From sequence record NC_061445.1: a stretch of DNA of 64,000 bases; one strand, 5' to 3'. Both the position numbers and the translations under genes were made by a program. Position 1 is the stretch's first letter. Each line of letters begins with the position of its first letter. The notes beneath the pieces were generated by a model. The model was given only the letters and a program-made list of their open reading frames with translations, was not told the origin of the DNA and searched no databases. This document shows positions 13,832 to 63,467 of this stretch, one piece after another.

Positions 13832-14170
13832 TTATTGGGTATTTACAGAAGCCAGAACTTCTTGTACTACCTTAAATTTGACTTCCATGCGCTTAAAATC
13901 AGGCAAAGAGCGATGCCCATATCCTGGGTACAGTTCAGCGAATTTCGAATCGACAGATTGTGGGACGATCTCGGCCTGAATAGACTCAAACAAGACTACG
14001 TTCGGTAAATGGAGAACACCAGCAACGACAAAATCCTCAATCACAGGTTTAGCCTTAGAGTCGCGTTCGTAGCGCTTGCACATATTGTTCATGTGCGCTT
14101 CGATAGCATCGACAACTCTGCGAGCCAAAACATCTGGCAGATTAAGATCATAGACAGTCGAATATTGCAT
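13832..14170 (-). CDS. Hypothetical protein (112 aa)
   Basis: AGGAG RBS; operon packing. Confidence 0.7.
   Translation of the reverse strand: MQYSTVYDLNLPDVLARRVVDAIEAHMNNMCKRYERDSKAKPVIEDFVVAGVLHLPNVVLFESIQAEIVPQSVDSKFAELYPGYGHRSLPDFKRMEVKFKVVQEVLASVNTQ
13840..13848 (-). promoter_or_regulatory. Class-M motif CTGTAAATA
   Basis: Exact copy 26 nt upstream of the 13814 start. Confidence 0.6.
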
Positions 14171-14186
14171 GGTGTTCTCCTAGTTA

Positions 14187-14555
14187 TTACATCAGTGGCA
14201 TTTGCGGATCGACATACGTGTATTCAAACACGATGTTCCAACCAGATGCAGTTTGTTTGTTTTCGTGGAAGCGGAATCCATAGAACATCAGAATACCGCG
14301 ATGACCAGCAAGCGTAGGCTCGTACTCAGTGTAAGCTGTTTCGAGTTTCATCTTGGCTGCGATGCTTTCTGACCAGGCATCGAAATCGAACGGACCCTCA
14401 GGAACTTCCCAAGAGACTGTATGCTTAGGCCAGTGAGAGGCTTGCATGTCAGTGTCTTTAGAAATCCAGTCAAGGTGATTCAGGTCCATGTGATACGCGA
14501 CAGCGCGAGGGATGCCGTGCTCGGTCATGTAACGCTGCAATTGATCAAGACGCAT
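14187..14555 (-). CDS. Hypothetical protein (122 aa)
   Basis: AAGGA RBS; operon packing. Confidence 0.7.
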   Translation of the reverse strand: MRLDQLQRYMTEHGIPRAVAYHMDLNHLDWISKDTDMQASHWPKHTVSWEVPEGPFDFDAWSESIAAKMKLETAYTEYEPTLAGHRGILMFYGFRFHENKQTASGWNIVFEYTYVDPQMPLM

Positions 14556-14892
14556 TGCATGTTTCCTTAATGTTGCGTGGGAATGCAGTCACATTGATGA
14601 GCGTTGTGTCTGCTTGGTGTTCGTGCGGCATACTTTCATGCGACACAATCCAAACATTTGTCACTTCAAGTTTGTTGCGCAGTGCAAGCAACAGGTGAGA
14701 AGCAATCGAAATAGGATGGACATAGTTGGACACAGTGATAGAGACAGCAACTGCCTCAGCCTCATGTGTCTTTTCTTTTCCATCCCATAGTTCAACGCTC
14801 ATGGACTGACGGGCGGCCTCACTCTTTAGCGTGTCCATATCGAGAGTGTGGTGTAAACGCTCTTTCATTTTAAACTCCGTATAGTCTGACAA
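14545..14892 (-). CDS. Hypothetical protein (115 aa, TTG start uncertain)
   Basis: Fills the gap between neighbours; start codon uncertain. Confidence 0.55.
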   Translation of the reverse strand: MSDYTEFKMKERLHHTLDMDTLKSEAARQSMSVELWDGKEKTHEAEAVAVSITVSNYVHPISIASHLLLALRNKLEVTNVWIVSHESMPHEHQADTTLINVTAFPRNIKETCNAS

Positions 14893-14908
14893 AGAGACAG
14901 TCTATAAA

Positions 14909-15400
14909 TTAGAGAGCGAGACCCTTCAGGAGCAGACGGGCAGCAGCCGTGAACTGTTTCTTTTTCAGATCAGGCAACTTGTTGTAACGGTCGATGATGT
15001 CAGCAAGACCGATATCGTTTTCATCATCGATCACGTTTTCTTCATCGTCCACATAGCGACCTTCTTGACCAGCAACACCAGTATCACCCTTCTGCCAGTT
15101 AGCTTTAGTAACAGTCAACAGGAAGCTGCCACGGCATTCTTCTTTATGGCCGCCGATAGTGACAGGCAAACGAACCATAGTGTGAGTGAGGTCTGCAATG
15201 CGCTGCACAGCAACGCCATCAGGATAGGAGGCAAACACATTAGACAGATCGATATCTGCCATATTGCCCGGCGCAGGTGACTTAAGGACGAAATTCACAC
15301 GGAATGTTTCGCCGCCATTAACATCATACTGTCCGTCCATGAGGACTTTCTCATTAGCACGGAGCGTATTGACAACAACTGTCTGAACAGGATCAAACAT
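14909..15400 (-). CDS. Hypothetical protein (163 aa)
   Basis: GAGG RBS; operon packing. Confidence 0.7.
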   Translation of the reverse strand: MFDPVQTVVVNTLRANEKVLMDGQYDVNGGETFRVNFVLKSPAPGNMADIDLSNVFASYPDGVAVQRIADLTHTMVRLPVTIGGHKEECRGSFLLTVTKANWQKGDTGVAGQEGRYVDDEENVIDDENDIGLADIIDRYNKLPDLKKKQFTAAARLLLKGLAL

Positions 15401-15402
15401 GA

Positions 15403-15885
15403 TTACTTCCTCAGGTAGTCCGCCAGCATAGCAATGTGATTGCTAATCATTTTCTTCTGGTCAGGGGTGAGTTGACTGTACGGCGGCAGGTCAGGATAGA
15501 CGCCCTGCATAGCCAGATAGGTTGTCTGTATGTCTGCCTCTGGGCGCTTGCCGACACAGAACACACAGTCTTTGAATATATACGAAGGCGGGCAACCGAA
15601 TGGCGCTTCGATAACTTCAACCCTATCGCAAGACACGAGCATCAAGCAGTTACCGAAAGTTTTGATCACGTCTTTCAGCCCAACAACTTTCAGCTTCTCG
15701 TAAGTAGCATCAATCAAGCTGGTGGCTGCACCCTCGATAGAAACGTTAACTGTCACGTCAAGTGTTGCTGTAGCAGCACCAAGAACAGATTGGTTAACGA
15801 GGACGATGCCCTCCTCCGTGAGGGCACGACGCAGTATAGCTTCGAAGCCACTCTGCGGTTTAGGTTTTACTTCATGAAGATTCAT
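15403..15885 (-). CDS. Hypothetical protein (160 aa)
   Basis: TGATG coupling to the helicase stop. Confidence 0.7.
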   Translation of the reverse strand: MNLHEVKPKPQSGFEAILRRALTEEGIVLVNQSVLGAATATLDVTVNVSIEGAATSLIDATYEKLKVVGLKDVIKTFGNCLMLVSCDRVEVIEAPFGCPPSYIFKDCVFCVGKRPEADIQTTYLAMQGVYPDLPPYSQLTPDQKKMISNHIAMLADYLRK

Positions 15886-17486: not shown

Positions 17487-17488
17487 AT

Positions 17489-18468: not shown

Positions 18469-19643
18469 GCTGGCAGGTAACCGAAGTACAACAGCGTGTA
18501 GCCTTCGAACTTGTAGTTCAGACTAAACGCGTTCAGGCTATTGATGCTGCTACCGTGGAAGCCCATGTTGTGGCGTTCTTCACGACCGATGTTACGCAGC
18601 AACTCACGGAAGATACGCATGTCGAGAGAAGTAGTGAACTCTTTCTCAATCGGCTTCGCAAGTTTCAAGCTGTCTTGAACAGAACCGCTATCGTTGCCAA
18701 ACTTGAGTCGGAACTCCTGCTTCTTGATATGCAGCTTCGCGTTCGTGTTACCCTTCTTCTCGATCAGTGTCGAGATGTTAGCGAACGGTGCAGACAGATC
18801 GCCTTTAACAACACAACCCAACAGCGGCTTACCGAGTTGCGCAATCATGTTGTCCATGTAGCGATAGTCTTCGTCACTTGCCTGAATAGGCGGCAGCGTC
18901 AGAACGAACGATTCAGCTTCGGCAGCGAATGAACTGCTATCAACGTGGAACGTTACCTTCTCTTCACCGCAGAAGCGATACACGAGGTCGAACATCTCGC
19001 CGGTCATACTGAAACGGAACGGCTGCACTTTCTTTTTCAAGTCAGCACGATAACGAGAAGACGTCCAGTGTCCAGGGCTAACGAGGCTCAGACTTGAACC
19101 ATCGCAGATAACACGACACATCACGGTCTGGCCTGTGATTGTATCTTTCAGACGCGTCATCTTAACGCCCTGAGTCATCGCGTCGATTACTTCGCGTGTC
19201 ATCTCATGACCGCCGCTCAAGTGGTGACGCAGACCCTGTTCAACCATTGGGATTTGCTCGGCAGATACAGGGCGCAGTTTAACTTCGGACTTGTACTTGC
19301 CTTTCTGCTCGCTGATATGCAGCATCTTACCGTCGAACTCAACGTTCAGCTCTTTACGCTTGCTGATCAGGCCACCGAGTTGAATTGGGTCGATGTTCAT
19401 AATCGTATCTTCATCGGCAACTGCACCGGGAACGAGATACGCAACGAACGTATCAGGTGTACGACCGAGAATGAACACGTCGCCCTTATAGGTGACTAAC
19501 AGGTGGATGTGCGTCAGCTTGTCGTCCGACTCGGAGAAACGAGTTACGCTATCCACGCGTTTGAGAATGTCCGACAGGAAAGTACCGTTCAACGTGATAT
19601 TGCATTTCTTAGCGGGGTTCTTCGGTAATCGACAAGTCTTCAT
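18465..19643 (-). CDS. Putative sliding clamp, DnaN/beta-clamp-like (392 aa)
   Basis: Size and threefold beta-alpha pattern; N-terminal ITLNGTFLSDILKRVDSV...THIHLLV resembles the DnaN start; lies next to the DNA polymerase. Confidence 0.55.
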   Translation of the reverse strand: MKTCRLPKNPAKKCNITLNGTFLSDILKRVDSVTRFSESDDKLTHIHLLVTYKGDVFILGRTPDTFVAYLVPGAVADEDTIMNIDPIQLGGLISKRKELNVEFDGKMLHISEQKGKYKSEVKLRPVSAEQIPMVEQGLRHHLSGGHEMTREVIDAMTQGVKMTRLKDTITGQTVMCRVICDGSSLSLVSPGHWTSSRYRADLKKKVQPFRFSMTGEMFDLVYRFCGEEKVTFHVDSSSFAAEAESFVLTLPPIQASDEDYRYMDNMIAQLGKPLLGCVVKGDLSAPFANISTLIEKKGNTNAKLHIKKQEFRLKFGNDSGSVQDSLKLAKPIEKEFTTSLDMRIFRELLRNIGREERHNMGFHGSSINSLNAFSLNYKFEGYTLLYFGYLPA

Positions 19644-19902
19644 CTCTATCCTCTAAAACAAATTGTAGTGTGCCCTGTATATTTACAGCATTCAGGCGCT
19701 TACCTGTCTGTGCAATCAGGCCATTCAACACGCCGATAAGATCAGCGCTGTAGCAGTTCTCAGCAATCTTGTGGACGTACATATCGTCAGGCACATCGCC
19801 TGGGTTAAGCTGCCAAGCAGTACGCAAGGCAGCTCCCATGAAGGCCGGACGCTCCACCAGATGCTTGTTCAAAAACGAACATACATCTTCGGCAGTTATC
19901 AT
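19609..19902 (-). CDS. Hypothetical protein (97 aa)
   Basis: ATGA overlap with the polymerase stop. Confidence 0.6.
   Translation of the reverse strand: MITAEDVCSFLNKHLVERPAFMGAALRTAWQLNPGDVPDDMYVHKIAENCYSADLIGVLNGLIAQTGKRLNAVNIQGTLQFVLEDRDEDLSITEEPR
19680..19688 (-). promoter_or_regulatory. Class-M motif CTGTAAATA
   Basis: Exact copy 37 nt upstream of the clamp-like gene. Confidence 0.6.
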
Positions 19903-22900
19903 TTCTTCGTAATCCCCTTGAGCGCCAGTTTGAGCATCGACTTGCTGATTTTGATTTTCTTCTGAGGTGCAGCGCCACCAGCAGCGGCTGCCGCTTTCTT
20001 CGCTTTCTCCTCAGCTTCATACTTCTCGAACGTTTTAGTGTTCTCAGGAAGTTCAGCAAGCCACTCTTTGATGTTCTTCTTGTCTTTGTTGGTAAGAGGA
20101 TTGACTTTGTCCATAGAACGAATTTTGATATCGTTCGCCCAAAGCTGTTTCTTCATCCACTCAGACATAAGATGGTACTGGTCTTCCATGATAGAGTCCA
20201 GCGTCTTATCGACGTCGAGGTCTGTCTCACCGAGTTCATCACGTTTAATCTCAAGGCCATCTTTGATGATCTTCTTGAGCTGCACGTAAGAGAAGTTCCA
20301 GCTCTGCACATCTTTCTCGGACGCGCCGATTTCAAAGTCGATTTCAGGCACGGACGTGAACTCAAACCCTGCATGACGTTTCTGTACGACTTCGACCACT
20401 GCGCTGGTCATCGCACGTTCGATCATATCGAGCGCAAGGAAGATCCATTTGTAATCGCAGTCAACGGTCAAGGAGTCGTGTACCGATACGTTCATGTCGA
20501 AGTCTGGGTACTCGCCATTTGCTTTGAAGTATTCGTACTTCATGCGGTCAAGAATACGAATCGCACTCATCATCAGGTCAGAACCAAAACCCTGAACTGG
20601 ACTGTTTACCGCGCGACGATCACACGCAGCATGAACCATGTTGGCTTCTTTGTGTGACTCAGGCAGCATCAAGCCCCAGAGATGACGACGACGACCAACA
20701 GGCGATTCAACAAAGAAGTTCTCATGTGCAAACTTCTTAATCTTGTCGAACCACTTCAAGCCAACAGGGAATCGCGTAAGGAACTTGCCTTTGATTTCTG
20801 CAATCTCAGACACTTCACGACCTGTAGACTTCGCAAGACCTTTATCACCCTGCTGATAAATCAAGCCGAAGATAACTGTCTTAACCGCGTTACGTACGGA
20901 CTTGGTTACGTCCATTACGTTTGGAATGCCGAAGAAGTATGCGGCGTTGATTTTGTGAACGTCACCCTCTGCTTCGACGCGGTGTTCGATCCACGGGTCA
21001 GGCACTGTACGATAGCGATGACGCAACGCACGACCCTGTTCGAATACGTCTGCAACACCCTGGTCACCAGAGATGATTGACCAACCACGAACTTCGTGCG
21101 CTGAGTAGTCGACCTTGATAAGCAGGCGATTCTTACGCGCAATCAGAATACGTTTGATCAGTTTACCCATCTCACTACGCGACGGTACCTGTTGCAAGTT
21201 CGGGTCAGACGCAGAAGTACGACCCGTTACAACGCCGAGATAACCGTACGTTGGTCGAATAGATCTGTCGTGTTTGAAGTCTTCTGACTCGCCCCAGAGT
21301 TTAAGCAGACTGTTAACGTAGGCGTTCTTGAGCTTGTACGCTTTTCCGAGCTTCGAGTAGAGAGCAACAAGCGGTATATCTGCATACGCCGCTTGGAAGT
21401 CTTTGTCGAGCTTGCCCGTCTTCTTACCGTTCTCACGTAACTGCTCCCCTTCTTTCAGAGGCTTGAGTTTCATCACATCGAAGAACAGGATTTGTTTATG
21501 CTCCGACTTCGACATATCGAACTTGGTGACCTCGACTTTGCCCATAAGACCCATCTTAGGAACATTGTCGTCTTTGCAGATCATCTTGTTCGCAGCCTTA
21601 ACTTCAGGGCTGTTCATGAACTCACGCTCTACGTTTCGAATCTCCTCGTTGATTGGAGAGTTAGGAAGGTTGAGCTTAAACAGGTAGTCGATATCAGCGC
21701 CAGCACCTGTTGTCTCAAGTATCGAGAACGCATGAATCTGGTCTGAGATTTGCTCACTGACCATAGACTCATACTTACCGTACTTGATATCGTTCGCTCG
21801 AAGCATCTGCTTCTCTGCAATGCGGAACGGCACAATAACGTCGAGGCCAGCATACTCTTGCACGTTTTCATCAAGGTCAACGTCTGCAATCGTCGCTCGC
21901 ATCTCTTTACCGAACGATACTTCGTGATACACGGTACAACCGAACTGCATCGTCAGGTTCGCCAAGTTGTAGTAACCGTTACCGGTGACGTTCAACAACG
22001 ACTTGGCGTTTTCATCAAAGGCAAACTCACCCGCCTGAATATCCCAAACGTTTGCTGCGTAACTACGAATGCCGAAGTTAGAGCGCATTACGTTCAGGTC
22101 GAACTTCGCGTTGGTATAGATTTGATACTTGTTCGTGTTCTCCTCAAAGAAGTCACGGAACAGTTCTTTCACCTTACGCAGTTCTTTCGGACTGAATGGG
22201 CTGTCTCTGTGATAGACAGGTATGACATACGCTTTCTTACCGTTGTCCGATAACTGCACCGTCAGAATCTTGTTCTTGATACGGTTCAGGTTCTCGGTTT
22301 CGGTATCGACTGCAACCTTCTTGGAACGCTTCATACGCTTCAAGATTTTCTCAAGCTGCTTGACCTTCGTTACATACACGAGGTCCCAGTTACGCTTCTT
22401 ACCGCACGTAACTTCGTCGATCTTATAGCGCATTCCCTTGTTCAGCCACGGCAACATCCAACGTGCCATGTAACCCAGAGTGTACGATGAACCTGCAATG
22501 TGCATCGGGTTCAACACTGTGTGGTAGCTGACGTTCGGTAGATGAATGAAGCTGTGCTTCTTCCCATCGAACTTTAACTTCGTTGGGATTTCAACACCGT
22601 ACCAGTGCTCGTAGTGCTCTTTCGAGAACTGGATCTTCTCGTTGTTCAACGCTTTGAACGGCGCTTTACCAAACGTCAGGACGTAATCAGGTTTATAGTC
22701 TACGATGATTTCTCGCAGACGATTGGCGAACGCGGCATCAGCATCTTCCTTGAACTGCTCACCCTTGTCATACGTCTTGAACATGTTATACGAGATAACA
22801 AGGAAGCTCCAGTCATCGAGAGTAGTCTTTGTCGGGAAGACGTCCTCAAGATACTGCATCTGGTTCAAGAACAACTCACCTTCTGTCGAGGTAAAGATTC

Positions 22901-23072
22901 TACCACTACGCAGGTCTTCTGTCGGCATATGATCAAGGACGAGTAGCGCTTTACCGCCTTTAGCGCTTTTGCTTACGCTTTTTAATAATCGAACACCGTC
23001 ATAGGTCTGCATGTCTGCAAACTGCTCTGGCGGGTCGAAGTCGAGTGAAATAAACTTGGGTTTGTTCACCAT
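19899..23072 (-). CDS. polA: Family A DNA polymerase with N-terminal UDG-like domain and 3'-5' exonuclease (1057 aa)
   Basis: Exo: VAVDTETE, NAKFD, YAGLD. Pol: TGRTSASDPNLQQVP, DYSAHEVR, KTVIFGLIY, NSPVQG, VHDS. The first ~210 aa have UDG-family-4-like spacing (KPDYVLTFGKAPF). Confidence 0.93.
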   Translation of the reverse strand: MVNKPKFISLDFDPPEQFADMQTYDGVRLLKSVSKSAKGGKALLVLDHMPTEDLRSGRIFTSTEGELFLNQMQYLEDVFPTKTTLDDWSFLVISYNMFKTYDKGEQFKEDADAAFANRLREIIVDYKPDYVLTFGKAPFKALNNEKIQFSKEHYEHWYGVEIPTKLKFDGKKHSFIHLPNVSYHTVLNPMHIAGSSYTLGYMARWMLPWLNKGMRYKIDEVTCGKKRNWDLVYVTKVKQLEKILKRMKRSKKVAVDTETENLNRIKNKILTVQLSDNGKKAYVIPVYHRDSPFSPKELRKVKELFRDFFEENTNKYQIYTNAKFDLNVMRSNFGIRSYAANVWDIQAGEFAFDENAKSLLNVTGNGYYNLANLTMQFGCTVYHEVSFGKEMRATIADVDLDENVQEYAGLDVIVPFRIAEKQMLRANDIKYGKYESMVSEQISDQIHAFSILETTGAGADIDYLFKLNLPNSPINEEIRNVEREFMNSPEVKAANKMICKDDNVPKMGLMGKVEVTKFDMSKSEHKQILFFDVMKLKPLKEGEQLRENGKKTGKLDKDFQAAYADIPLVALYSKLGKAYKLKNAYVNSLLKLWGESEDFKHDRSIRPTYGYLGVVTGRTSASDPNLQQVPSRSEMGKLIKRILIARKNRLLIKVDYSAHEVRGWSIISGDQGVADVFEQGRALRHRYRTVPDPWIEHRVEAEGDVHKINAAYFFGIPNVMDVTKSVRNAVKTVIFGLIYQQGDKGLAKSTGREVSEIAEIKGKFLTRFPVGLKWFDKIKKFAHENFFVESPVGRRRHLWGLMLPESHKEANMVHAACDRRAVNSPVQGFGSDLMMSAIRILDRMKYEYFKANGEYPDFDMNVSVHDSLTVDCDYKWIFLALDMIERAMTSAVVEVVQKRHAGFEFTSVPEIDFEIGASEKDVQSWNFSYVQLKKIIKDGLEIKRDELGETDLDVDKTLDSIMEDQYHLMSEWMKKQLWANDIKIRSMDKVNPLTNKDKKNIKEWLAELPENTKTFEKYEAEEKAKKAAAAAGGAAPQKKIKISKSMLKLALKGITKK

Positions 23073-23107
23073 CTAGTCCTATCAGTGCGTCACATATTGA
23101 TGGCTGT

Positions 23108-23116
23108 TATTTACAG
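23108..23116 (-). promoter_or_regulatory. Class-M motif CTGTAAATA
   Basis: Intergenic, 36 nt upstream of the polymerase, just downstream of a terminator. Confidence 0.7.
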
Positions 23117-23128
23117 ATTCCGAAAAGC

Positions 23129-23155
23129 AAAAAGGGCAGCCGAAGCCACCCTTTT
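23129..23155 (-). terminator. Repeated-family terminator GGGTGGC-TTCG-GCTGCCC-TTTTT
   Basis: Hairpin plus U-tract after the 23165 stop. Confidence 0.85.
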
Positions 23156-23164
23156 GGATTAAAT

Positions 23165-24187
23165 TTACAGAGCTTTAACGGCGTCGTAGAACGCTGCGTA
23201 AGCATCGCTGTAGAGCGTAAAGTTGCCCAGCTGTTTGAATGCAGATTTAGGCAGATCGCTTGGAGCACCAGCAGTCGGATTGTACTTCGCAACAGTGAAT
23301 GCGCCACGGCCACGAGCTTGCTTAATCTCACCAATCATTCCACCGGACGGACCAAGAACAATACCAATCTTCTTGGTTTCGCTCATGACGAAGATACAAT
23401 CTTCTTCCCCGCCCATATTGGCAACAGAAGCAGTTACGCTCTTATTAGGTGCAGGCAGCTTCATCAGCTTGAATAGAGCCTTGACGTTTTCACCTTCTCC
23501 GCCACGCATGAGGGCATTGTAGAGATTGTCATAGGACTCAGAGCGAGCCTGATTACGCGCAACAGTCTTAGCGCCAGGAGTGCCGCCAGTCTGTTTCTGA
23601 TTCGGACTTTGCGTCCACGTCAGACCTTCATCCAGGCAGTTCTGGCCGGTCATCGCTTCCTGAATGATCACACGCTTGTCTTTGCCTGTCTCAATATTCT
23701 TATCAGCTTCGGCCTTAGTTTTGTACGGGCCTTTGATGATAGTGTCGTTGGCGTGACGAGTGTGATCGACAACGTACCACTTGTTGCGTTCGATCTTACC
23801 GTTCGCATCTACCGTTTTAGCACTTACCGGACGTGACGTTTTAGCAGGAGCGTCTTGTCGAATAGCTACAGGCTTGATCTTGATTGCACGAAGACCGTTG
23901 ATTGTAGCCACCAGCGTTTTGGCTTTGTACAGGTTCTTCATCGCAGTGACAAGATTCTTGCCTGCAGCTTTCTTGGCCAGTGCGGTAGTAGCATCGGCAT
24001 CGTTCAGCAGGTCGAGAACAGCGGCCAGCTTTGCAGTGTCCAGCTCTTTGATCTTAACCAGCTCATCGATCTTCTTAACGATAAGTTTTGCGTTCTTACC
24101 GAAGAGAATCTCGGCATTAGCCAGTTGCTTTTTGTTAGCAGCGGAGATTGATACCACCGTGCCTGAATCAAGGGTAATGTCGAACAT
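23165..24187 (-). CDS. Basic Lys/Ala-rich putative internal virion protein (340 aa)
   Basis: High K/A content; N-terminal VVSISA motif. Confidence 0.6.
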   Translation of the reverse strand: MFDITLDSGTVVSISAANKKQLANAEILFGKNAKLIVKKIDELVKIKELDTAKLAAVLDLLNDADATTALAKKAAGKNLVTAMKNLYKAKTLVATINGLRAIKIKPVAIRQDAPAKTSRPVSAKTVDANGKIERNKWYVVDHTRHANDTIIKGPYKTKAEADKNIETGKDKRVIIQEAMTGQNCLDEGLTWTQSPNQKQTGGTPGAKTVARNQARSESYDNLYNALMRGGEGENVKALFKLMKLPAPNKSVTASVANMGGEEDCIFVMSETKKIGIVLGPSGGMIGEIKQARGRGAFTVAKYNPTAGAPSDLPKSAFKQLGNFTLYSDAYAAFYDAVKAL

Positions 24188-24196
24188 TGTCGTTCC

Positions 24197-24742
24197 TTAT
24201 CGTTTCTTGGTCCAGTTGTTCTGCGGCTTAGGCTGCTCGACAGTCTCAGGCGAAGTGTTCTCCTCAGAGATTTCTTCTTCCTCGTCTTCGTCTTCAACCT
24301 CATCAGCCGCAGGCTCAGGAGCCTGATTGGTATTGAGTACGGACGCTGCGATAGGTGCTTGTGCTACAGTGTTTACAGTAGCGACAGGTTCAGCAGCAGC
24401 CGCTTCACGCGCTTTGGCGACTTCACCAACAGCGTGTTCGTGCACCTTATCAGTAGTAAGCAGAGCGCCTTTCTCTTTTAAAATAGCATCTGCTTTCTCT
24501 TGATCCCACTGGTCCCACAGGATATCAAGACCCTTGAATGCGTAGTTCATGCCTTTCGGCAGCTTGCCACGGCCATTGAAAGGCAGACCGTTTGAAGGAG
24601 TAGCTGGCTCGAACTCGTCCATCATCTCCCACTTACGTTTTGCTTCAATGCACTTCGGTCCCCACACACCGTCACACTGACCGTCGTACAGACCGAGCAG
24701 AGTCATGATGACTTGGAGCTTCTGATAGAATTTGTTCAGCAT
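24197..24742 (-). CDS. Peptidoglycan-binding-domain protein (181 aa) with acidic low-complexity tail
   Basis: LLGLYDGQCDGVWGPKCIEA matches the PG_binding_1 G.Y.G..DG.WGP pattern. Confidence 0.6.
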   Translation of the reverse strand: MLNKFYQKLQVIMTLLGLYDGQCDGVWGPKCIEAKRKWEMMDEFEPATPSNGLPFNGRGKLPKGMNYAFKGLDILWDQWDQEKADAILKEKGALLTTDKVHEHAVGEVAKAREAAAAEPVATVNTVAQAPIAASVLNTNQAPEPAADEVEDEDEEEEISEENTSPETVEQPKPQNNWTKKR

Positions 24743-24758
24743 AGCGAGTCCTCTTACG

Positions 24759-24780
24759 AAAGGAGGGGCCGAAGCCCCTT
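24759..24780 (-). terminator. UUCG hairpin with weak U-tract after the SNF2 gene
   Basis: AGGGGC-TTCG-GCCCCT then CCTTT. Confidence 0.5.
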
Positions 24781-24785
24781 ACCTT

Positions 24786-27700
24786 TTAGACTGATTTGTT
24801 TTTCGACATGGTGAGTTTCAGCTTGTCGAGCGCAGTGGTCACACGTTTGATATTCGTGATTGTGTAGCCAGCTTTCACGATCTTGTTGATGCGTGATTTC
24901 GCAGTAGCGACATTCTTCACGAACCCAATCCACATACCCGGCGCCTGGTCGAACGTACCGAACTTACGAGTGTTCGGAATCTTCGTGCCAACAAAGCGTT
25001 TCATTTTCGGGTTGGTCTTGAGGTCAAACATGATACGCAGTCGATCTTCCATAACCATTGGGTATGCCTTGATGTGGTTCTTATCAGAGGCAGACTTATG
25101 CTTAACGAGGAAGAACTTCGGCAACTGCTCTTGACCCTTCGTGGCCAGCTTAACGTTGAAGCCCATGCGCGGCGTTGACTCGTCGAAGAAGTCCAGAACA
25201 AACTCCAGACGCTTCTCGGACATACGGTCGAACGACAGCTTTTTCTTGACCTCGATGAAGTCAAGCAGTGCTTCGAAGTCAGCGTAGTAGGCGCAGTCGT
25301 AATAGACGTAATCGCCGAACTCCACGAAGTCGAACTCTTTGAGCGCCTTAGCATCAGGGTCAGTTGCATCAGCGTACAGAGCAACGAATCCGTTGTACAC
25401 TGTAGGCGTCAGCTCCAGAGCCATGTCACTACCAGTCGCCTCTGCCACGGCTTTCGCTCCAGGCTTCATGCGAGTAGTTGTGTTTGCCAGAGGCGGCAGG
25501 TCAGCGGCCTTACGACGGCGAACTTTCTTGGCAGCTTCTTCAACACCTTCGTTGATTGGCTTACCTTCTTCCTTGTTCTGCTTACGCTGGGCAACACGCG
25601 CAGCTTTACGCGCTTGCGCTTCGACCTTCTTCTCAGTCTCTTTGGTATCTGCTGTCTGCGTTTCGTCGAGAACGGTGTCTTCAACTTCAACACGGTTCGC
25701 TTCGGCATTAGCACGTTTGCGGTCTTTCTCATTCGCCCACGGCTTACGCTGTTCGAAGAAACGTTTCAGGTCAGCTTTATCCACCTTCGTTGCGATGTGA
25801 ACTTTCGTCGCAGGAATAGAGACAGTCTCACCAGTTCCGGCCAGACGTACACGCACAGTGCTGATTGGACTATCTGCACGGAGCTTACCGTCAACCATAC
25901 GAGCAGTGACAGACACGATCAGACCGTTACCGTATTCAGTAACTACTGGCGCACGATTCAGAGAGTCTTTCAGATTCTCACCGCTTGCGAAGTTGCGGTT
26001 ACGTGCCCAATCCAGAATACGCTCCAGACCCCAGCCATGACGATCAGGAATCTTCTGGTTCGCTACGAACGGAGTCTGCTCCATCACGCGGAAGTCATTC
26101 AGAGCAGGCGTAGACGGCAGCGCTTGCATTGCTGCAACCGTTGTGCGACGCATCTCTTGGAACTCCTGCGATTCGATTTCGTTCAGATCACGTTTCGCCA
26201 AGAAGTACGGCTCGAAGTCTTTCATCGTGTTGTTATCAAGCAGGAGCGATGGGCTCATCTTGATCGGGTCCAGCTTATACTGGTCGAGTGCTTCGTAACG
26301 CTTGTTGCCCTTCTCATCGAAGCGAGTCTTCTCAAGCGTCTTCCACATCAGACGAGCGACCTTACCAACTTCCAAGGTCTTATTCGTCATTACCCAGTCG
26401 ATGAAGACAACTTCACGAGCCATGTCGCCTGGCTTACCGTTCTCGTCCAGCTTCGCAGCAGCAACGTCAGGACGGAAGATACGCGCAGTAGACTGATCGT
26501 ATGTGCCCGGTGACCACGGAGTATCGCAGCGGATGATACGGCTACCCATCTGCATGTTGTGGCCTTCGGAGATCGCTTGTTCGTTCGCAATCAGAATCTG
26601 AACGTTCGGGTCAGTTTTGAATGCGTCGAGGTTAGCGTCTTTGTTCTGGCCGAGCTTACCGACTTCACCATGATACACTACAGCGACTTTCTTATAGTTC
26701 GCTGGCAGCGCATTGTAGATCGCGTTTGCAGCACGGACGTAGCGCGTGAACACAATCAGTTTGCCCTGCACTTCCGGCTTCCAGTAGTCTGGATCATCCG
26801 GCGGCGGAGTCATTGAAGGCGGCAGGTCTTGACGCTGGAACTCTTCGGACTGCTTACGCGCCAGATACTTCTGTCCGTTGTAGACAGCGATATCCAATTC
26901 ACGAGGCTGCACACCCGGTTTCCATTCGAAGATCTGTTGCTCTTTAACCATAATGTCACGTTCAGGTTGCACTTCGAAGTGCTTCTTGATACGGTCGATA
27001 ATGGTCAGCACTTTGGCCGAAACGAAGTTGTTAACGCCAGCAGCTTCAAACGTCAGACGAGCAACGTCATCACCCATTGGGTCAGTCAGCATCATCTCCA
27101 TACGCTGGAAGTACATGTTCAGGTCTGCGTTGCCCGCAAGCAGTGCGCCTAAATCATCGCCTTCTTCGATATCATCTTCGTCTATATCGGTCGCGTTCTC
27201 GTTGTCACCGCCACCAGTTTCATCGTCCTCGTCATCAGATGACTTAGACTTCTTGGCGTTTCGTGCGGCTTCGTCGAGTTTCTCCAGCACTTCTGCGTAC
27301 ATTGCGTTGTACACTTCTTGGTGCAGAGCAGAGTTCGGAACTGACGGGTCATCGATCTCAACCTGAATGAAGGTATCAATCGGGTTCGGCAGCATGAACG
27401 CCCAGTGCTTACGCTTGAACGAGATGAACGCTGTATGGTTTGCCATACGTGAGTGCGCACGACGAATCATTTCGATATCGTCTTTCGCGCCGTCATACGC
27501 AACATCCAGTGAGTCACCGAACATCGCAGGCGTCATCAGTGCAGCCTGACCAACGATATCACGCACACGGTCAGTTACCAGCGTACCAGTAGCGATACGA
27601 GCATAGCGAACAGACGGAGCAGTGAAGACCGCTTTGGTGTTGAAGTGAACCTGAGAGCCAGCCTGACCGCCAGAGAAGTTCTTCACTTTGTGAGACTCAT

Positions 27701-32300: not shown

Positions 32301-32309
32301 TATTTACAG
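32301..32309 (-). promoter_or_regulatory. Class-M motif CTGTAAATA
   Basis: Intergenic, 23 nt upstream of the HNH gene. Confidence 0.65.
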
Positions 32310-39645: not shown

Positions 39646-39654
39646 TATTTACAG
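39646..39654 (-). promoter_or_regulatory. Class-M motif CTGTAAATA
   Basis: Intergenic, 27 nt upstream of sbcD, downstream of a terminator. Confidence 0.7.
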
Positions 39655-42185: not shown

Positions 42186-42194
42186 TATTTACAG
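42186..42194 (-). promoter_or_regulatory. Class-M motif CTGTAAATA
   Basis: Only 6 nt separate it from the SLOG ATG; no RBS. Confidence 0.6.
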
Positions 42195-51024: not shown

Positions 51025-51233
51025 TAGTGAAATACCTTCTGGCGTTCAACCCAAAGATCAGCAGCACGATACACCTTACGCAGTTCTTCCAGCTTTGCTT
51101 CTGGAACAGGTGTTGGTGAAGAGAAGATGCACTGCGGTGTCTTCTCCTCTTTGCCTGTTACTGGATTGATATCGGTATCGTGACGCATTACGTTCCAGCA
51201 CCCGTTAGTGCGGATATTGATAGTCTGTTCCAC
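51024..51233 (-). CDS. Hypothetical protein (69 aa)
   Basis: GTG start, AGGT RBS; class-M motif upstream. Confidence 0.6.
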   Translation of the reverse strand: MEQTINIRTNGCWNVMRHDTDINPVTGKEEKTPQCIFSSPTPVPEAKLEELRKVYRAADLWVERQKVFH

Positions 51234-51269: not shown

Positions 51270-51278
51270 TATTTACAG
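51270..51278 (-). promoter_or_regulatory. Class-M motif CTGTAAATA
   Basis: Intergenic; heads the operon containing sbcC. Confidence 0.7.
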
Positions 51279-54358: not shown

Positions 54359-54367
54359 TATTTACAG
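54359..54367 (-). promoter_or_regulatory. Class-M motif CTGTAAATA
   Basis: Intergenic, 37 nt upstream of dnaX. Confidence 0.7.
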
Positions 54368-54465: not shown

Positions 54466-54663
54466 TTAGGCAAAGCACATTTCCCAGCGCGGTACAACGC
54501 GGAAGAAGTGCTTAAAGTTGGACGGTGGATTCTTCTTGATTGACTCAAGTTTCTGTTCCACTACGTCATAATCTTTTATGCCACTCTCAACGGTGTGAGT
54601 GGTGAACGTACCGTCAGCCTGAATCAAATCGGCGACAACACGGTAGCTTGGTCTACGAAGCAT
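54466..54663 (-). CDS. Hypothetical protein (65 aa)
   Basis: AGGAG RBS; CTGTAAACA variant at 54703-54711. Confidence 0.65.
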   Translation of the reverse strand: MLRRPSYRVVADLIQADGTFTTHTVESGIKDYDVVEQKLESIKKNPPSNFKHFFRVVPRWEMCFA

Positions 54664-54757
54664 CTATTCTCCTGTGCTAAAATTTCTCGTTCTTCTGAAT
54701 TATGTTTACAGTTTACCGCGAGTAGTCACATAAGAATAAAGTCAGACAAATCTTAAA

Positions 54758-57601: not shown

Positions 57602-57607
57602 AACGGC

Positions 57608-58126: not shown

Positions 58127-58164
58127 AGTAACCTCAATTCTCAGGAGTAGGTTATCGCAGCGAG

Positions 58165-58824: not shown

Positions 58825-58833
58825 AATGGTTCC

Positions 58834-59046: not shown

Positions 59047-59057
59047 AGGTTATTCCT

Positions 59058-59555
59058 CTATACGGGTTTGAGTTTCAGATGCGCCCACGGAAAATCTGCT
59101 TTCTCCAGCAACTCGTTTGCAGTTCCCATCTCGGCGAATTTGTCAAACACATGACCGTACATCGCAGCGAACTCGGCATTCTCCAAGTCTGCTTGCCAAT
59201 CATCATTATCGGTCACATGCTTCTGCCAGATCTCATCGTGCAACTTAGAGAAGGCTTCGACACGCTTAGGGTAAAGCAGCGAAAACAGGTCACGGGCGAA
59301 ACAGATTTTATACTTGTCCTCAGAAGCAAGTTTCTGCAAAGAGGTCAATGGGTATTTACAGTCAAAAGCAGACAGCACCTCGCTATACTGACGAAACAGA
59401 CGCTTATTCTTTACAGCAATCAATTCCATCGGGCAGTCTTTGATTAGACGCATCACCAACTTCTTGGAGCGCAGTTCAGGCCATTCAGATGGAGGCAACA
59501 CAGCGCTTTGGGACAACTTAAACTCAAGTCGAAACAGAACTTCAATAGGGCTCAT
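59058..59555 (-). CDS. Hypothetical protein (165 aa)
   Basis: ATGA overlap with the upstream gene. Confidence 0.65.
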   Translation of the reverse strand: MSPIEVLFRLEFKLSQSAVLPPSEWPELRSKKLVMRLIKDCPMELIAVKNKRLFRQYSEVLSAFDCKYPLTSLQKLASEDKYKICFARDLFSLLYPKRVEAFSKLHDEIWQKHVTDNDDWQADLENAEFAAMYGHVFDKFAEMGTANELLEKADFPWAHLKLKPV

Positions 59556-61129
59556 TCTGCGTCCTCTAAATATGTGATATGGTCAGAGAATGGTTTTTGA
59601 ATAAACAGTGCTTCGTCATAATGAATCTCACCATTGACCGTATCAATCAACGCACCATCGTGCTCCAGCGAGTAAATACATTTGACCTGCGTGTCGTCCA
59701 CAAGAAGTTTCATCAGCCTGTACGATTCAATGCCTGAGAAAATATGATTGAGGATTTTTCGTTTCCTGCGTTCATTGATTTTCAATTTCTTGAGATCATA
59801 TTTAACACCAGACTGACAAGCAAGGGTTCGCTCTCCGAATTTCGTTTCACGTATGCGCTCGATATAAATATCAGTTAACGCAGACAGCGCGACAGACAAC
59901 GGGATTGAATCGTTATTCCACTTTCGGATAAAATCGAAAGTCTGCTTTGTCTCCATAAGCCTACGCAATTGAGCAAACACTCTACCGCGCATTGAATAAG
60001 ACAACTGACCCATTGAGAAGATCGTCGCATAGAAACAAATCTTCGTTTCTGCTTTCGGTAGATTGTTGCGATGAGCAATATCGTCAACGGAAGTCACGCC
60101 TTCAAGGAACGAACATGCGATGCCATTAACTCGAAGCTCCTCAAGTAAAATGTTGAGCTGGCTGCTGGACATATCCCAGTTGGTTCCTATAGCACTGCAC
60201 ATCTGTTTGAGTTCCGATGGGAACGATTGGAAGCCACCACCCTTCTCAAACAAACGACCTCCAATCTTTGCTAGCCGATACACAGGCATATAGCGAATAA
60301 TCAGCGGAGACTCCTGAACTATCTGCACAGGCCCGCTAAGTATTGACTGGAGAGATGCAAGGACATGATGATACTGCCCTTGTGCCCGCTGCGACTTCAT
60401 GTATGACCGTTGTTCGAGATAAGTTAGAATGGGATCAATTCGAATCTCATTCGGAGCCAACTTAGCAAGAACGGCCGTGTATAACTTTTTAGCCTCTCTG
60501 TCCCTGTTTGAGCATAACGCTTTGAGATCATGTCGTGGCCACTTGAATGGTTTTTTCACAGCAACATCTAACATGTCTTTTATCGTTTGCCCGTGCTGCT
60601 CGTTTACCAAGCGCAAAGGACTATACAGACGAGTAACCTTCAAAAGGTCATCGCCCGTCTTAGGCTTCTCAGGGTACATGCACTCTAACACTTCGGCCCT
60701 TATGCGGAAGCGACGACACACTCCAGGTTTGCCCTTCTTGAAGATATGTCGTTTATGTTCGAAGACGTTATCGAGTAACCATTCTAGTGCTCGACTAAAA
60801 TGTTTCTCTGTCTTAGCAAACTTAGGCGCTACTGGTCCCCAACACTGCGAATTTACTCCGAATACCATCGGCAGAACTTTTCGCCCGAACTTAGAGGGGA
60901 ACGGTGTCCAAACCTCTCCGAACTTAGCGTTTCTCTGCTGGCTCTTAACAGGCGTATACAGCGATAGCTGCAACACATGCCAAAAGAACAGATTAATCTG
61001 TTTTCGGTATTCAGCTTCATGTTTCTTCGGCCCATCGTACGGACAGGCGAATACTATGTTATTCTGAACCCACTTGATAGGAAACATCTCCTGGTACGTG
61101 GGATTCTTCACCAAATACGGAGAAGCCAT
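59552..61129 (-). CDS. Compact family-A-polymerase-fold protein (525 aa) lacking an exonuclease domain
   Basis: GGRLFEKGGGFQSFP, NWDMSSSQLNIL, KICFYATIF, NHIFSGIE, LEHDGALI occur in Pol A motif order. Confidence 0.55.
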   Translation of the reverse strand: MASPYLVKNPTYQEMFPIKWVQNNIVFACPYDGPKKHEAEYRKQINLFFWHVLQLSLYTPVKSQQRNAKFGEVWTPFPSKFGRKVLPMVFGVNSQCWGPVAPKFAKTEKHFSRALEWLLDNVFEHKRHIFKKGKPGVCRRFRIRAEVLECMYPEKPKTGDDLLKVTRLYSPLRLVNEQHGQTIKDMLDVAVKKPFKWPRHDLKALCSNRDREAKKLYTAVLAKLAPNEIRIDPILTYLEQRSYMKSQRAQGQYHHVLASLQSILSGPVQIVQESPLIIRYMPVYRLAKIGGRLFEKGGGFQSFPSELKQMCSAIGTNWDMSSSQLNILLEELRVNGIACSFLEGVTSVDDIAHRNNLPKAETKICFYATIFSMGQLSYSMRGRVFAQLRRLMETKQTFDFIRKWNNDSIPLSVALSALTDIYIERIRETKFGERTLACQSGVKYDLKKLKINERRKRKILNHIFSGIESYRLMKLLVDDTQVKCIYSLEHDGALIDTVNGEIHYDEALFIQKPFSDHITYLEDAE

Positions 61130-61162
61130 TGCATACTCCAGAAAAAGTGCTTCTTGCTCTTA

Positions 61163-61171
61163 TTTTTACAG
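61163..61171 (-). promoter_or_regulatory. Class-M motif variant CTGTAAAAA
   Basis: 34 nt upstream of the Pol-A-like gene. Confidence 0.45.
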
Positions 61172-61199
61172 TTTTTGGTGCTTTTCGATCTTTTTCTTG

Positions 61200-61480
61200 T
61201 TTTAGGTACAAAACAGAGTCACATCTTAACCCTCACTTCAACACCCCTACCTAAACCTCATGCGGACAAGCGAACCTCAGCCGCCCGCCAGCCGACAAGC
61301 TAATCAACTGGCTTCGCTAGGACAGCTAACAAGCTAGGGCTAAATAGCTGGCTAGATAGGCTTATATTCATCATAGATGCTAGGGCTTTAATGGGTATCT
61401 AAGTGCTAAAAATGAGCCAAGCGCGGATAGTCGTATGACGCTCGCTACGCATGTGAAATCAGCCGTAGACAGCTTAAAAG
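61200..61480. repeat. Non-coding tract with clustered GCTA/AGCT short repeats and a C-rich run; candidate origin
   Basis: About eight GCTA in ~61299-61409, preceded by a G-free C/A-rich run; within a ~490-nt gene-free gap. Confidence 0.45.
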
Positions 61481-61623
61481 CGAAAAATCACCTAACTGAT
61501 TTCGGTCAAAAATACCATGTAACTTTTTTCGAAAATCGCACTCGAAACTGTACGAATCGTGAGATTTTTCTGAAAATAGAGGAAAAACCCGAATAAAATC
61601 AAGGACTTTTCCCCCTTTTTCAG

Positions 61624-62283
61624 TTACTTTTTCTGCGAAACACGCTTCCCGAGCTTGACGCCGATTTGAGTCATGATGCGTTTGACAGTCTCCCCGTCGT
61701 GTTCAGCCATTGCACTCGCTAAACGTTCGCCCTGTTCACGCGATAGCTCTGGCATAATCATTTTCAGCATCTGTGAGCGCATCTTAGCTGATTTAGAGCG
61801 TCCTTTCGAGACAGACACGCCTTCATTCACCTTGAGCGCATTGCTAATCGCTTTCTGCACACGACGATCACCGAAGATATCGCCGAATACGTCACCGAAC
61901 AGGTCTTTGAACGATAGACCACCGCTCATAATGTCGTTTTTCGTGAAACGCACAGGCTGTCCGAGAGCGTTTGTCTTCGTGCAGTGCGTGGATTCAACTT
62001 CGTTCGTTGTGCGTCCACCAGCACGGAAGTTCTCGTCAGGACGTGACGCTTTGCCCTCTGCGCCTGGCTTCGTGTTGCCATTACGCAGATCTGCATCACC
62101 TTCAACAGCTTTATCCGGGTCGAACATGTCGTCCGCTTTTGCGCTTTGATTCGCATCAAACGGAATCTTACCTGTCAGCTTGTTTGGATCTGGCCAACTG
62201 TCCGGGATATCAGACGCAGGTTGTGGTTTGTTCGTCATATCACCGTTAGCTTCGCTGCTCAAGCTGATCTTAATACGTGCCAT
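61624..62283 (-). CDS. Hypothetical protein (219 aa), N-terminus MARIKISLSS; putative internal virion/scaffold protein
   Basis: AGGAG RBS; ISLSS motif; disordered N-half. Confidence 0.7.
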   Translation of the reverse strand: MARIKISLSSEANGDMTNKPQPASDIPDSWPDPNKLTGKIPFDANQSAKADDMFDPDKAVEGDADLRNGNTKPGAEGKASRPDENFRAGGRTTNEVESTHCTKTNALGQPVRFTKNDIMSGGLSFKDLFGDVFGDIFGDRRVQKAISNALKVNEGVSVSKGRSKSAKMRSQMLKMIMPELSREQGERLASAMAEHDGETVKRIMTQIGVKLGKRVSQKK

Positions 62284-62294
62284 TGTCTTTTCTC

Positions 62295-63404
62295 CTATCG
62301 GATCTTAAAGCCATTGAAAATGTTGTACGCAACTTCTTTGCGCTGTACGGGACGCGTGGTACACACCCATTCCCATTGTTCGTTTCGTGCTGTGCGCTTC
62401 TTAGGCGCTTCCATAACTTTCAGCACATAGTTTTTGAACGGCAGAACGAGAATGTCTTCTGGTTCTAACGGACCTGATCGAGCGGGCAGCACGACCGTGA
62501 TGTTACCAACAGTCAGCTCCTGATCGTAGTTCAACACGTTCGCTTCTTCGCTGATGTTGCCCTTAACAGGAGGCACACCCAAATCGAAGACGAGCGTACA
62601 ATGCGTGAATGCCTCAACGCCTTTCACGCGCAGCGTAACGTGTTTGCCGCGCCACGGTTCAAGGTTCGCTGCTGTTAGTTCGACTTCAACGCCGTTCAGC
62701 ACAAGCATAGGGCGTGGAAACGCAGGTAGCATTGATTCGTTCAGACGTACCGAATATGTCGCCTGAGTAAAGTATTTTGGGATAAGCTGATCGAAATCCA
62801 CGTAACTGTCTTTGCGCTGCTGTCTGAAAGTTGCAGGGCTGGTGGATTGATCGAGCGTGTAGCCTGATGCGTTTTGAATGTGATGGTGAGTCACCACGTT
62901 GTAGATATAGCCTGTGCTAATAAACCCAGGCACAACGCCCTGCCGATAGCAGATGCCGCAGTTCGCAACGTTACCACCATCCCACTTGACGTCGAACTCT
63001 TCGCCTGTGTCGATACCCATCAGGTCGGCAGCGTCCATTGCAGCGTTCATACCGTCGTCGATATCATCGAGGGTAACTACTTGGCGTCCACCACCAAACA
63101 TACCTTTCGAGACAGTGCCGATCTTAACGCCGCCGTCCATAGAACTGGATTCGCGTCCGAGTGATTTGAGCGCACCGTCTTGGTTATCGAAGATATCGTT
63201 TTCAACTTTGTTGCAGCTACAGGTGAGGCCCATCTTCGCCTTTTTAAAGATGACGATATCGGTGGCGTCCACCTCAAGGGCCTGTTCGACTTTCGACTTC
63301 ACAACCTCTTGGATTGAGTTCAGGCGTTTCTGCACTCGCTCCGTTTCGTAGGTTTTGTGCCTGTCGTATTTATTTCGCTGTTTTCCGCGTTCGATCCAGC
63401 TCAT
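62295..63404 (-). CDS. Putative head-completion/neck protein (369 aa) with CxC and CxxC motifs
   Basis: GAGGAG RBS; TCSCNK and CGICYRQG; beta-rich C-terminus (TVVLP...EDILV); CTAATTT upstream; weak assignment. Confidence 0.45.
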   Translation of the reverse strand: MSWIERGKQRNKYDRHKTYETERVQKRLNSIQEVVKSKVEQALEVDATDIVIFKKAKMGLTCSCNKVENDIFDNQDGALKSLGRESSSMDGGVKIGTVSKGMFGGGRQVVTLDDIDDGMNAAMDAADLMGIDTGEEFDVKWDGGNVANCGICYRQGVVPGFISTGYIYNVVTHHHIQNASGYTLDQSTSPATFRQQRKDSYVDFDQLIPKYFTQATYSVRLNESMLPAFPRPMLVLNGVEVELTAANLEPWRGKHVTLRVKGVEAFTHCTLVFDLGVPPVKGNISEEANVLNYDQELTVGNITVVLPARSGPLEPEDILVLPFKNYVLKVMEAPKKRTARNEQWEWVCTTRPVQRKEVAYNIFNGFKIR

Positions 63405-63426
63405 AATCTTCTCCTCTGTGTGGTTG

Positions 63427-63433
63427 AAATTAG
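63427..63433 (-). promoter_or_regulatory. Class-L motif CTAATTT
   Basis: 23 nt upstream of 63404 in the divergent intergenic region. Confidence 0.55.
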
Positions 63434-63460
63434 TGACTAAAAATTTCTACCTTCGACCTA

Positions 63461-63467
63461 GTAAATA
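63461..63467 (+). promoter_or_regulatory. Class-M motif core GTAAATA on the plus strand
   Basis: 36 nt upstream of the only plus-strand gene. Confidence 0.55.

Follow-up and report, generated by a model that had tools for sequence, protein, structure and literature searches.

A putative phage-specific promoter class heading replication and recombination genes in Erwinia phage pEa_SNUABM_3

A short box, CTGTAAATA, recurs on the minus strand of a 64,000-nucleotide (nt) stretch of the Erwinia phage pEa_SNUABM_3 genome (the window; bases 124001-188000 of NC_061445.1 / MZ443770.1). We propose that, with the A-rich bases conserved directly upstream, it forms a unit, aAAT-CTGTAAATA, that is likely the single-block, -10-like core of a putative phage-specific promoter class serving replication and recombination genes. 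pEa_SNUABM_3 is an Alexandravirus with a genome of 266,175 bp, and its host is Erwinia amylovora, the fire blight bacterium. Jumbo phages of this type serve in fire-blight phage cocktails, yet nearly all of their genes carry a "hypothetical" annotation. With a dependable map of its promoters, such a genome could be divided into early, middle and late units, genes with no known role would gain timing hints, and unannotated transcription units could be flagged, such as a 1.3-kb stretch free of open reading frames (ORFs) that follows two boxes in tandem. As a motif, the box is not novel; the value of the present analysis lies in its extension and in a testable sigma assignment.

Gene starts and orientation were taken from the RefSeq gene table. 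The enrichment baseline was dinucleotide shuffling in the window and an order-3 Markov model genome-wide; enrichment, orientation, position, conservation and gene content are shown here.

RESULTS

Enrichment, orientation and anatomy of the box

An earlier note on this DNA, made from its letters alone, had listed nine exact minus-strand copies of CTGTAAATA and regarded the motif as a candidate middle promoter. All nine were recovered where the note had placed them. Its estimate of about 0.25 expected copies rises to 0.36 by shuffling, and the excess it had claimed is borne out, nine copies never being reached in the shuffles. Extended to the whole genome, as the note had proposed, the count is 30 against 1.05 expected, which makes CTGTAAATA the most over-represented 9-mer. 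A chance origin of the set is excluded.

The minus strand carries nearly all genes of the window. In the genome, the copies are divided between the strands (16 plus, 14 minus), and each of the 30 is co-oriented with its surrounding genes (chance ~1e-9). Position is similarly constrained: 19 of the 30 lie 6-51 nt upstream of an annotated start, most commonly at ~36 nt, where ~0.9 would be expected (P ~3e-22), and three more head stretches with no annotated gene. In the window, the note had placed eight of the nine copies within 40 nt of a start, and the measured distances are 6-36 nt.

The genome holds 41 GTAAATA heptamers, preceded by T in 33 cases and by CT in 30, which indicates that the full 9-mer is the selected unit. 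When the 30 copies were aligned, only AAAT directly upstream was conserved. Information content was ~0 from -30 to -9 relative to the box, in line with the note's remark that no shared sigma70 -35 element is evident. No register of CTGTAAATA supplies both the A at -11 and the T at -7 of a sigma70 -10 hexamer; the last base of TAAATA is A, and conservation among the 30 copies does not extend to the next base. Position 8 of the box is variable: CTGTAAACA, CTGTAAAGA and CTGTAAAAA, with the same A-rich lead, precede several genes by 23-39 nt, including those for SSB, ParB, gp210 and gp219. Furthermore, a hairpin and T-run precede 8 of the 30 copies (crude background ~10%), and five of these eight sites, including those before the PolA, gp205 and clamp-loader genes, are convincing intrinsic terminators. 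Tandem copies occur in intergenic gaps at genome positions 254556 and 254613, and at 88221 and 88018.

Genes downstream of the box and conservation in related jumbo phages

Replication and recombination functions dominate among the genes downstream of CTGTAAATA. Outside the window, the box heads the NAD-dependent ligase gene and the gene of the annotated sigma factor gp243, and a variant heads the SSB gene. The gene calls of the earlier note mostly hold: the family A DNA polymerase with its exonuclease, the clamp, the HNH protein, the SLOG/YpsA protein and the clamp loader were recovered, whereas the SbcD-like protein gave only a weak match.

Fourteen box-headed genes have orthologues in Yoloswag, fHe-Yen9-02, JA29, Lu11 or PaBG, and the box or a one-base variant lies before most of these orthologues, while the remaining intergenic sequence around the conserved boxes differs between phages. 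The box is kept before the PolA, clamp, ligase, SbcD-like, clamp-loader, gp229 and sigma genes in two to four other genera. PolA is the clearest example: before its gene, a terminator is followed by aaaCTGTAAATA in five phages, with aaaCTGTAAATG in PaBG.

Among phages that encode a gp243-type sigma factor, exact copies of CTGTAAATA number 33 in Lu11, 29 in Yoloswag, 28 in AD1, 24 in fHe-Yen9-02, 19 in JA29, 18 each in HRDY3 and Xanthomonas PhiXhv-12, 8 in Vibrio GR7B, 5 in Peetri, 1 in Sen-NF (a 108-kb record) and 0 in PaBG; a reversed control word gives 0-5. The box is the top or second most over-represented 9-mer in Yoloswag and Lu11, and a crude test for a Shine-Dalgarno sequence and a start at most 60 nt downstream of it was significant in all eight genomes examined. 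PaBG has ~10 aaaCTGTAAAnn sites, a degenerate aaaCTGTAAA form, located after terminators and 25-40 nt before start codons. The class is therefore not really missing from PaBG; the core common to the clade is CTGTAAA, and the TA extension depends on the lineage.

The GenBank record of Lu11 (JQ768459.1) carries features labeled "regulatory / promoter / putative middle/late promoter", so the class has been recognized computationally since 2012. Of three such features examined, two begin with CTGTAAATA (e.g., CTGTAAATACATAGTA) and the third with CTGTAAATG. As in pEa_SNUABM_3, the annotated 16-mers that begin with CTGTAAATA are co-oriented with the genes and stand before replication and recombination genes, and Lu11 carries homologues of both sigma-like proteins described below. 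The two phages differ in that the Lu11 box has a conserved downstream GTA (CTGTAAATA..aaGTA) that the pEa_SNUABM_3 box lacks, and the Lu11 sigma factor is only 36% identical to gp243. Judged by its sequence and over-representation, its orientation and position relative to genes, and its retention at orthologous genes, the pEa_SNUABM_3 box belongs to a putative promoter class of the Lu11/PaBG/Alexandravirus ("Lupandier") jumbo phages, one predicted before in a relative. We found no mention of the CTGTAAATA motif in a phage context in the literature.

Other candidate promoter classes in the genome

The earlier note had proposed a phage-specific class distinct from CTAATTT, and this is supported by the enrichment, co-orientation, start-proximal position, orthologous conservation and gene set of CTGTAAATA. 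The cgCTAATTT motif, likewise a single block with no -35, heads mainly virion and lysis genes plus several of unassigned function; conserved across the clade, it most likely represents late promoters. In each of the six genomes analyzed, CTGTAAATA-type and CTAATTT-type motifs rank highest among the 7-mers enriched upstream of genes, the second class reading GTAATTT or TAATTTA in Lu11 and PaBG. In the window, the genes behind cgCTAATTT include gp197, which encodes the endolysin, and a series whose function is unassigned, and the motif is also present elsewhere in the genome.

Beyond the window, the plus strand carries a third class at genome 209-262 kb. Here, a conserved GCAAAtaaCTGGaCAAAAT block is followed 24-32 nt later by TGnTAyAAT and then by a 5' hairpin. 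TGnTAyAAT, present in 12 copies, is a good sigma70 extended -10 element, and the GCAAAtaaCTGGaCAAAAT block is too distant to serve as its -35; these sites are probably early promoters. Canonical -35/-10 sigma70 matches (at most two mismatches) are rarer in the genome (19) than in shuffled genomes (34-49).

Two sigma-like proteins as candidate readers

No RNA polymerase beta-subunit domain was found in the pEa_SNUABM_3 genome, and the host core enzyme must therefore be used. Genome scans with the sigma models PF04542, TIGR02937 and PF04546 gave no matches, and gp243 was located via the RefSeq annotation and PHROGs. This protein of 345 amino acids (genome 199450-200487), annotated as a sigma factor, matches PHROG 17569, "RNA polymerase sigma factor" (E 1e-157). 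A profile of 11 gp243 homologues matches regions 1.2-2.4 of RpoD in the PDB (E 1e-5), the WW and Y melting residues being aligned, and the Pfam model Sigma70_r2 alone matches gp243 weakly (E 0.05). No sigma region 3 or 4 was found in gp243 by Pfam at E up to 10, and the PDB profile match stops at 2.4. A single-sequence fold of gp243 (predicted local distance difference test [pLDDT], 43) was too poor to judge. Upstream of gp243, only CTGTAAATA or a variant is present, in four genera, and its Lu11 counterpart sits in a gene run headed by two annotated boxes.

The second candidate, gp338 (genome 264588-265727, outside the window), is an unannotated protein of 379 amino acids, orthologous to PaBG gene 112, which was suspected to be sigma-like in the PaBG paper (PMC7412058). 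At the sequence level, gp338 has no Pfam match and no PDB profile match, and hhalign against the gp243 family gave a probability of 1.6%. In its AlphaFold model (pLDDT, 82), residues 146-379 align with extracytoplasmic function (ECF) sigma factors, an alignment that takes in the sigma2 as well as the sigma4 domain; an extra N-terminal domain of ~145 amino acids precedes this part. Most rows of the fold-comparison list are sigma factors; against M. tuberculosis sigmaH, Z is 10.2, and the sigma2 part alone superimposes at 2.5-2.9 Å over ~82 residues. Only this comparison of folds links gp338 to sigma factors; the model being all-helical, a Z-score of this size is suggestive of an ECF-like sigma fold rather than proof of one. 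The gap before the gp335-339 operon, which holds gp338, contains both CTGTAAATA and an early-type promoter in pEa_SNUABM_3, Yoloswag and fHe-Yen9-02.

Each of the eight genomes searched encodes proteins of both the gp243 and the gp338 type, and each of the six analyzed for the two motif classes contains both; presence and absence therefore cannot pair a sigma factor with a motif. Pairing by a -35 element was rejected, neither class having one. The search for a cognate factor that the earlier note had called for has thus yielded two sigma-like candidates instead of a single one, and the odds are split between them. As the reader of CTGTAAATA we lean tentatively toward gp338, at a little less than an even chance; gp243 is also a serious candidate, to which we give an only slightly lower probability, and what is left falls to something other than these two.

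Copies and variants in the window

The copies in the window and their variants, together with the cgCTAATTT boxes and the third-class elements, are given in Table 1. The box before gp190 stands apart by its spacing. There is no Shine-Dalgarno sequence between the box and the gp190 ATG, and in Yoloswag the orthologous ATG also follows an exact box, by 7 nt, whereas the fHe-Yen9-02 and JA29 orthologues have ordinary leaders. The gp190 mRNA is thus a probable leaderless transcript, to judge from this spacing, in an arrangement kept in two genera. The copy inside gp218 is doubtful as a promoter: it is far from the next start (306 nt), it has no counterpart at the corresponding place among the exact copies listed for AD1, and about one copy in the genome is expected by chance. 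The variants that the note had reported before the gene starting at 54663 and before the 525-amino-acid gene were both found.

The RuvC-like gene gp223, which the earlier note took for the only plus-strand gene of the window, is accompanied on that strand by gp220 (61435-61596). The GTAAATA upstream of gp223 (63461-63467), which the note had regarded as a built-in orientation control, is present within TAGTAAATA. This element lacks CTG and has no conserved counterpart upstream of the gp223 orthologues of Yoloswag, fHe-Yen9-02 and JA29. It is consequently a poor orientation control, replaced here by the genome-wide co-orientation of all 30 copies, and it is probably not a member of the CTGTAAATA class. 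A few bases downstream of TAGTAAATA, still upstream of gp223, lies a TTATTTATA block that is shared with the gp223 orthologues of these three phages and matches neither the CTGTAAATA nor the CTAATTT class.

Table 1. Boxes and related elements in the window (window coordinates unless marked as genome)
Element	Position	Strand	Downstream gene and distance	Upstream of orthologues
CTGTAAATA	13840..13848	minus	25 nt upstream of the gp164 GTG start at 13814; gp164, 206 amino acids, annotated "DNA polymerase", no Pfam match	exact in Yoloswag and fHe-Yen9-02; variant in JA29
CTGTAAATA	19680..19688	minus	36 nt upstream of the gp173 start at 19643; DNA polymerase processivity clamp, PHROG 947 "processivity factor" (E 1e-38)	exact, at the same offset, in Yoloswag and fHe-Yen9-02
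CTGTAAATA	23108..23116	minus	35 nt upstream of the gp175 start at 23072, with a GC-rich hairpin and T-run directly before the box; family A DNA polymerase with 3'-5' exonuclease, Pfam DNA_pol_A (E 2e-52)	exact in Yoloswag, fHe-Yen9-02, JA29 and Lu11; CTGTAAATG in PaBG
CTGTAAATA	32301..32309	minus	22 nt upstream of the gp181 start at 32278; gp181 (Pfam HNH), then gp180, gp179 and gp178 (1948-amino-acid helicase)	exact in Yoloswag and fHe-Yen9-02
CTGTAAATA	39646..39654	minus	29 nt upstream of the gp188 start at 39616; SbcD-like metallophosphoesterase, Pfam Metallophos_2 (E 2e-5, short of the curated threshold)	exact in Yoloswag, fHe-Yen9-02 and Lu11
CTGTAAATA	42186..42194	minus	gp190 (SLOG/YpsA family) ATG at 42179, 6 nt after the box	
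CTGTAAATA	51270..51278	minus	36 nt upstream of the gp205 start at 51233, right after a strong hairpin and T-run; also heads gp204 and gp203 (776 amino acids)	
CTGTAAATA	54359..54367	minus	36 nt upstream of the gp209 start at 54322, after a hairpin and T-run; clamp loader, Pfam DNA_pol3_delta2 (E 6e-26)	exact in Yoloswag and fHe-Yen9-02; variants in JA29 and Lu11
CTGTAAATA	59353..59361	minus	inside gp218, 306 nt from the next start	
CTGTAAACA	54703..54711	minus	39 nt upstream of the gp210 start at 54663; 65 amino acids	CTGTAAATA in Yoloswag; CTGTAAAGA in fHe-Yen9-02
CTGTAAAAA	61163..61171	minus	33 nt upstream of the gp219 start at 61129; 525 amino acids	CTGTAAAGA in fHe-Yen9-02; CTGTAAAT variant in JA29
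TAGTAAATA	63459..63467	plus	upstream of gp223 (RuvC-like)	
TTATTTATA	63468-63480	plus		
cgCTAATTT	14906, 34023, 37634, 41641, 45872, 52978, 63427	minus	22-46 nt upstream of genes	
Third-class -10 part	genome 209082, 213542, 219396, 228594, 232014, 237042, 241452, 243713, 244833, 257553, 261639	plus		

DISCUSSION

From enrichment, orientation, position, conservation and gene content we infer the promoter status of the CTGTAAATA class, its actual start sites, its "middle" timing and the factor that reads it. We suggest that the host core RNA polymerase, equipped with a phage-encoded sigma-like factor, would bind the box with no -35 contact, melt the DNA at its TAAATA part and start transcription ~6-8 nt downstream of its last A. 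Indeed, the start codons located 6, 22 and 25 nt after the box (gp190, gp181 and gp164, respectively) leave room only for a start just after it. The class would drive replication, recombination and nucleotide-metabolism genes, including those for the clamp, PolA, the clamp loader, the SbcD-like protein, the ligase, SSB and gp243, and may sit, as a presumed middle class, between the host-type extended -10 class (presumed early) and the CTAATTT class (structural and lysis genes).

Several points weigh against this proposal. Five of the 30 copies are 77-102 nt from the next start, and three lie inside long genes. TAAATA has no T at -7, a base that region 2 of sigma70-type factors normally requires. 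PaBG and Sen-NF encode a gp243-type sigma factor despite the near-absence of the exact box (0 and 1 copies, respectively). The "putative middle/late promoter" label in Lu11 is a computational annotation, not an experiment, and in the literature we found no published transcription mapping for pEa_SNUABM_3 or its relatives, nor start, timing or binding data.

Three other explanations of the box have to be considered. The host sigma70 holoenzyme might itself read it as an unusual extended -10-like promoter (TG plus TAAATA), perhaps with a phage factor that disables -35 recognition and with no phage sigma factor involved. The TG beside a TA-rich hexamer and the missing -35 are consistent with such a scenario, and -35-less extended -10 promoters are run by a modified host holoenzyme in Thermus phage P23-45. 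However, TG and hexamer are separated by one base fewer than in TGnTATAAT, the hexamer has A where the -7 T is near-invariant, and the two conserved phage sigma-like genes would be left with no targets. Since the same genome holds a separate class that fits sigma70 better (the 12 extended -10 TGnTAyAAT copies), recognition by host sigma70 alone is unlikely. A canonical sigma70 promoter (-35 TTGACA, 17-bp spacer, -10 TATAAT) is rejected, there being no -35 at a fixed spacing and no fitting -10 register.

As a short, oriented and highly conserved box before one functional gene set, CTGTAAATA might also be the site of a phage DNA-binding regulator, either an activator as at the T4 MotA box or a repressor, the core promoter lying elsewhere. 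TAnnnT is somewhat enriched 8-14 nt downstream (7/30 versus a 7% background), but no TAnnnT occurs at a fixed downstream offset, no single offset being found in more than 3 of the 30 copies, and the three shortest box-to-start distances leave no space for a -10 element, a start and a leader. For these reasons, a T4-type middle promoter (a MotA box at -30 and a sigma70 -10 11-13 bp downstream) was rejected, and we consider regulator binding very unlikely. At least as improbable, and slightly more so in our estimate, is a signal that acts in RNA (CUGUAAAUA), i.e., a processing or translation-control site in polycistronic transcripts, such as a cut that leaves a short leader or none at the new 5' end. 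An RNA signal would be equally consistent with the strict strand specificity, with the location before start codons and with the spacing of 6-7 nt to the ATG of the SLOG gene. Against it, several copies stand right after strong intrinsic terminators, where little upstream transcript should arrive, the box-to-start distance can be anything from 6 to 51 nt, some intergenic gaps contain copies in tandem, and the A-tract adjoining the box upstream is conserved. A single-block promoter read by a phage-encoded sigma-like factor remains the explanation that we favor.

The layout of this putative promoter is reminiscent of the T4 late promoter TATAAATA, which consists of one A/T-rich -10 block of 8 bp and is recognized by gp55 together with gp33 and the sliding clamp. 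The TGTAAATA portion of the pEa_SNUABM_3 box matches TATAAATA at seven of eight positions, and both are without a -35. Moreover, the T4 late promoter is read by a phage sigma factor devoid of region 4, a region likewise undetected in gp243, the likeness being one of layout. Unlike in T4, the G at position 2 of this portion and the C before it are invariant, and CTG is required upstream; furthermore, T4 late promoters head late (virion and lysis) genes, whereas CTGTAAATA heads mainly replication and recombination genes and CTAATTT the virion and lysis genes.

Another parallel is offered by the sigma cascade of the Bacillus phage SPO1, which runs from the host sigma factor to gp28 and then gp33/34 (see PMC13401047). 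Similarly, pEa_SNUABM_3 has three candidate promoter classes and two phage sigma-like proteins, and the promoter before one of the sigma genes belongs to the class that comes earlier. In SPO1 the promoters have two parts, a -35 and a -10, while both phage-specific classes of pEa_SNUABM_3 are single blocks, and the sigma-class pairing proposed here is putative. The -10 core of promoters of E. coli sigmaE, an ECF factor, is "GTC" (PMC6648896). The resemblance of the box to an ECF -10 is a lead; ECF promoters need a -35 (GGAACTT in the case of sigmaE), and the pEa_SNUABM_3 box has none.

We tentatively put forward a cascade, which we hold to be possible though somewhat less than evenly probable, in which gp338, and not the annotated sigma factor gp243, reads CTGTAAATA. 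Host sigma70 would fire the early promoters of extended -10 type, among them the one before the gp338 operon; gp338 would then read CTGTAAATA and turn on the replication genes and the gp243 gene; finally, gp243, with no region 4, would read CTAATTT and turn on the late genes. Since gp243 has only CTGTAAATA upstream, while the gp338 operon has an early-type promoter as well, an order from early gp338 to middle gp243 would avoid a chicken-and-egg problem, and the ECF-like fold of gp338 also speaks for the cascade. Two weaker hints agree with this order: the T-12, A-11, T-7 rule of sigma70-type region 2 is obeyed by TAATTT but not by TAAATA, and CTGTAAATA contains TGTA, one base from the sigmaE -10 core. 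Conversely, an ECF-like sigma factor would be expected to need a -35, of which there is none, and a sigma factor with no region 4 is the natural partner for any single-block promoter. The clade also represents a compact natural system for studying how a minimal sigma factor reads a -35-less promoter: it combines three putative promoter classes, each of single-block or extended -10 type, with two sigma-like proteins that have diverged widely, on the well-studied enterobacterial polymerase.

Additional observations

Public RNA evidence on window positions 19001-25000 consists only of metagenome and metatranscriptome contigs, i.e., short fragments of relatives 85-95% similar, with no usable ends. 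Soil and food metagenome runs contain close relatives of this segment (sharing at least half of the words sampled), and more distant ones come from wastewater (including metatranscriptomes), compost, tobacco, retting and fermentation samples.

The E. coli Chi octamer GCTGGTGG is present 96 times in the genome (44 plus, 52 minus; ~8 expected), including 28 copies in the window. It is co-oriented with the genes in 66 of the 96 cases and is over-represented in Yoloswag too; the excess may reflect protection against host RecBCD or a codon-usage effect.

Outside the window, the minus strand at genome 86708-88017 holds 1.3 kb with no ORF of more than 72 codons and no tRNA or Rfam match. This stretch starts right after the tandem boxes at 88221 and 88018 and ends at a CTAATTT box. 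Its identity among Alexandraviruses is 71-79%, and its place is taken in Yoloswag, JA29 and fHe-Yen9-02 by 1.4-2.2 kb poor in ORFs, likewise headed by the box. The folding z-scores of its sense strand reach ~-3 in some windows.

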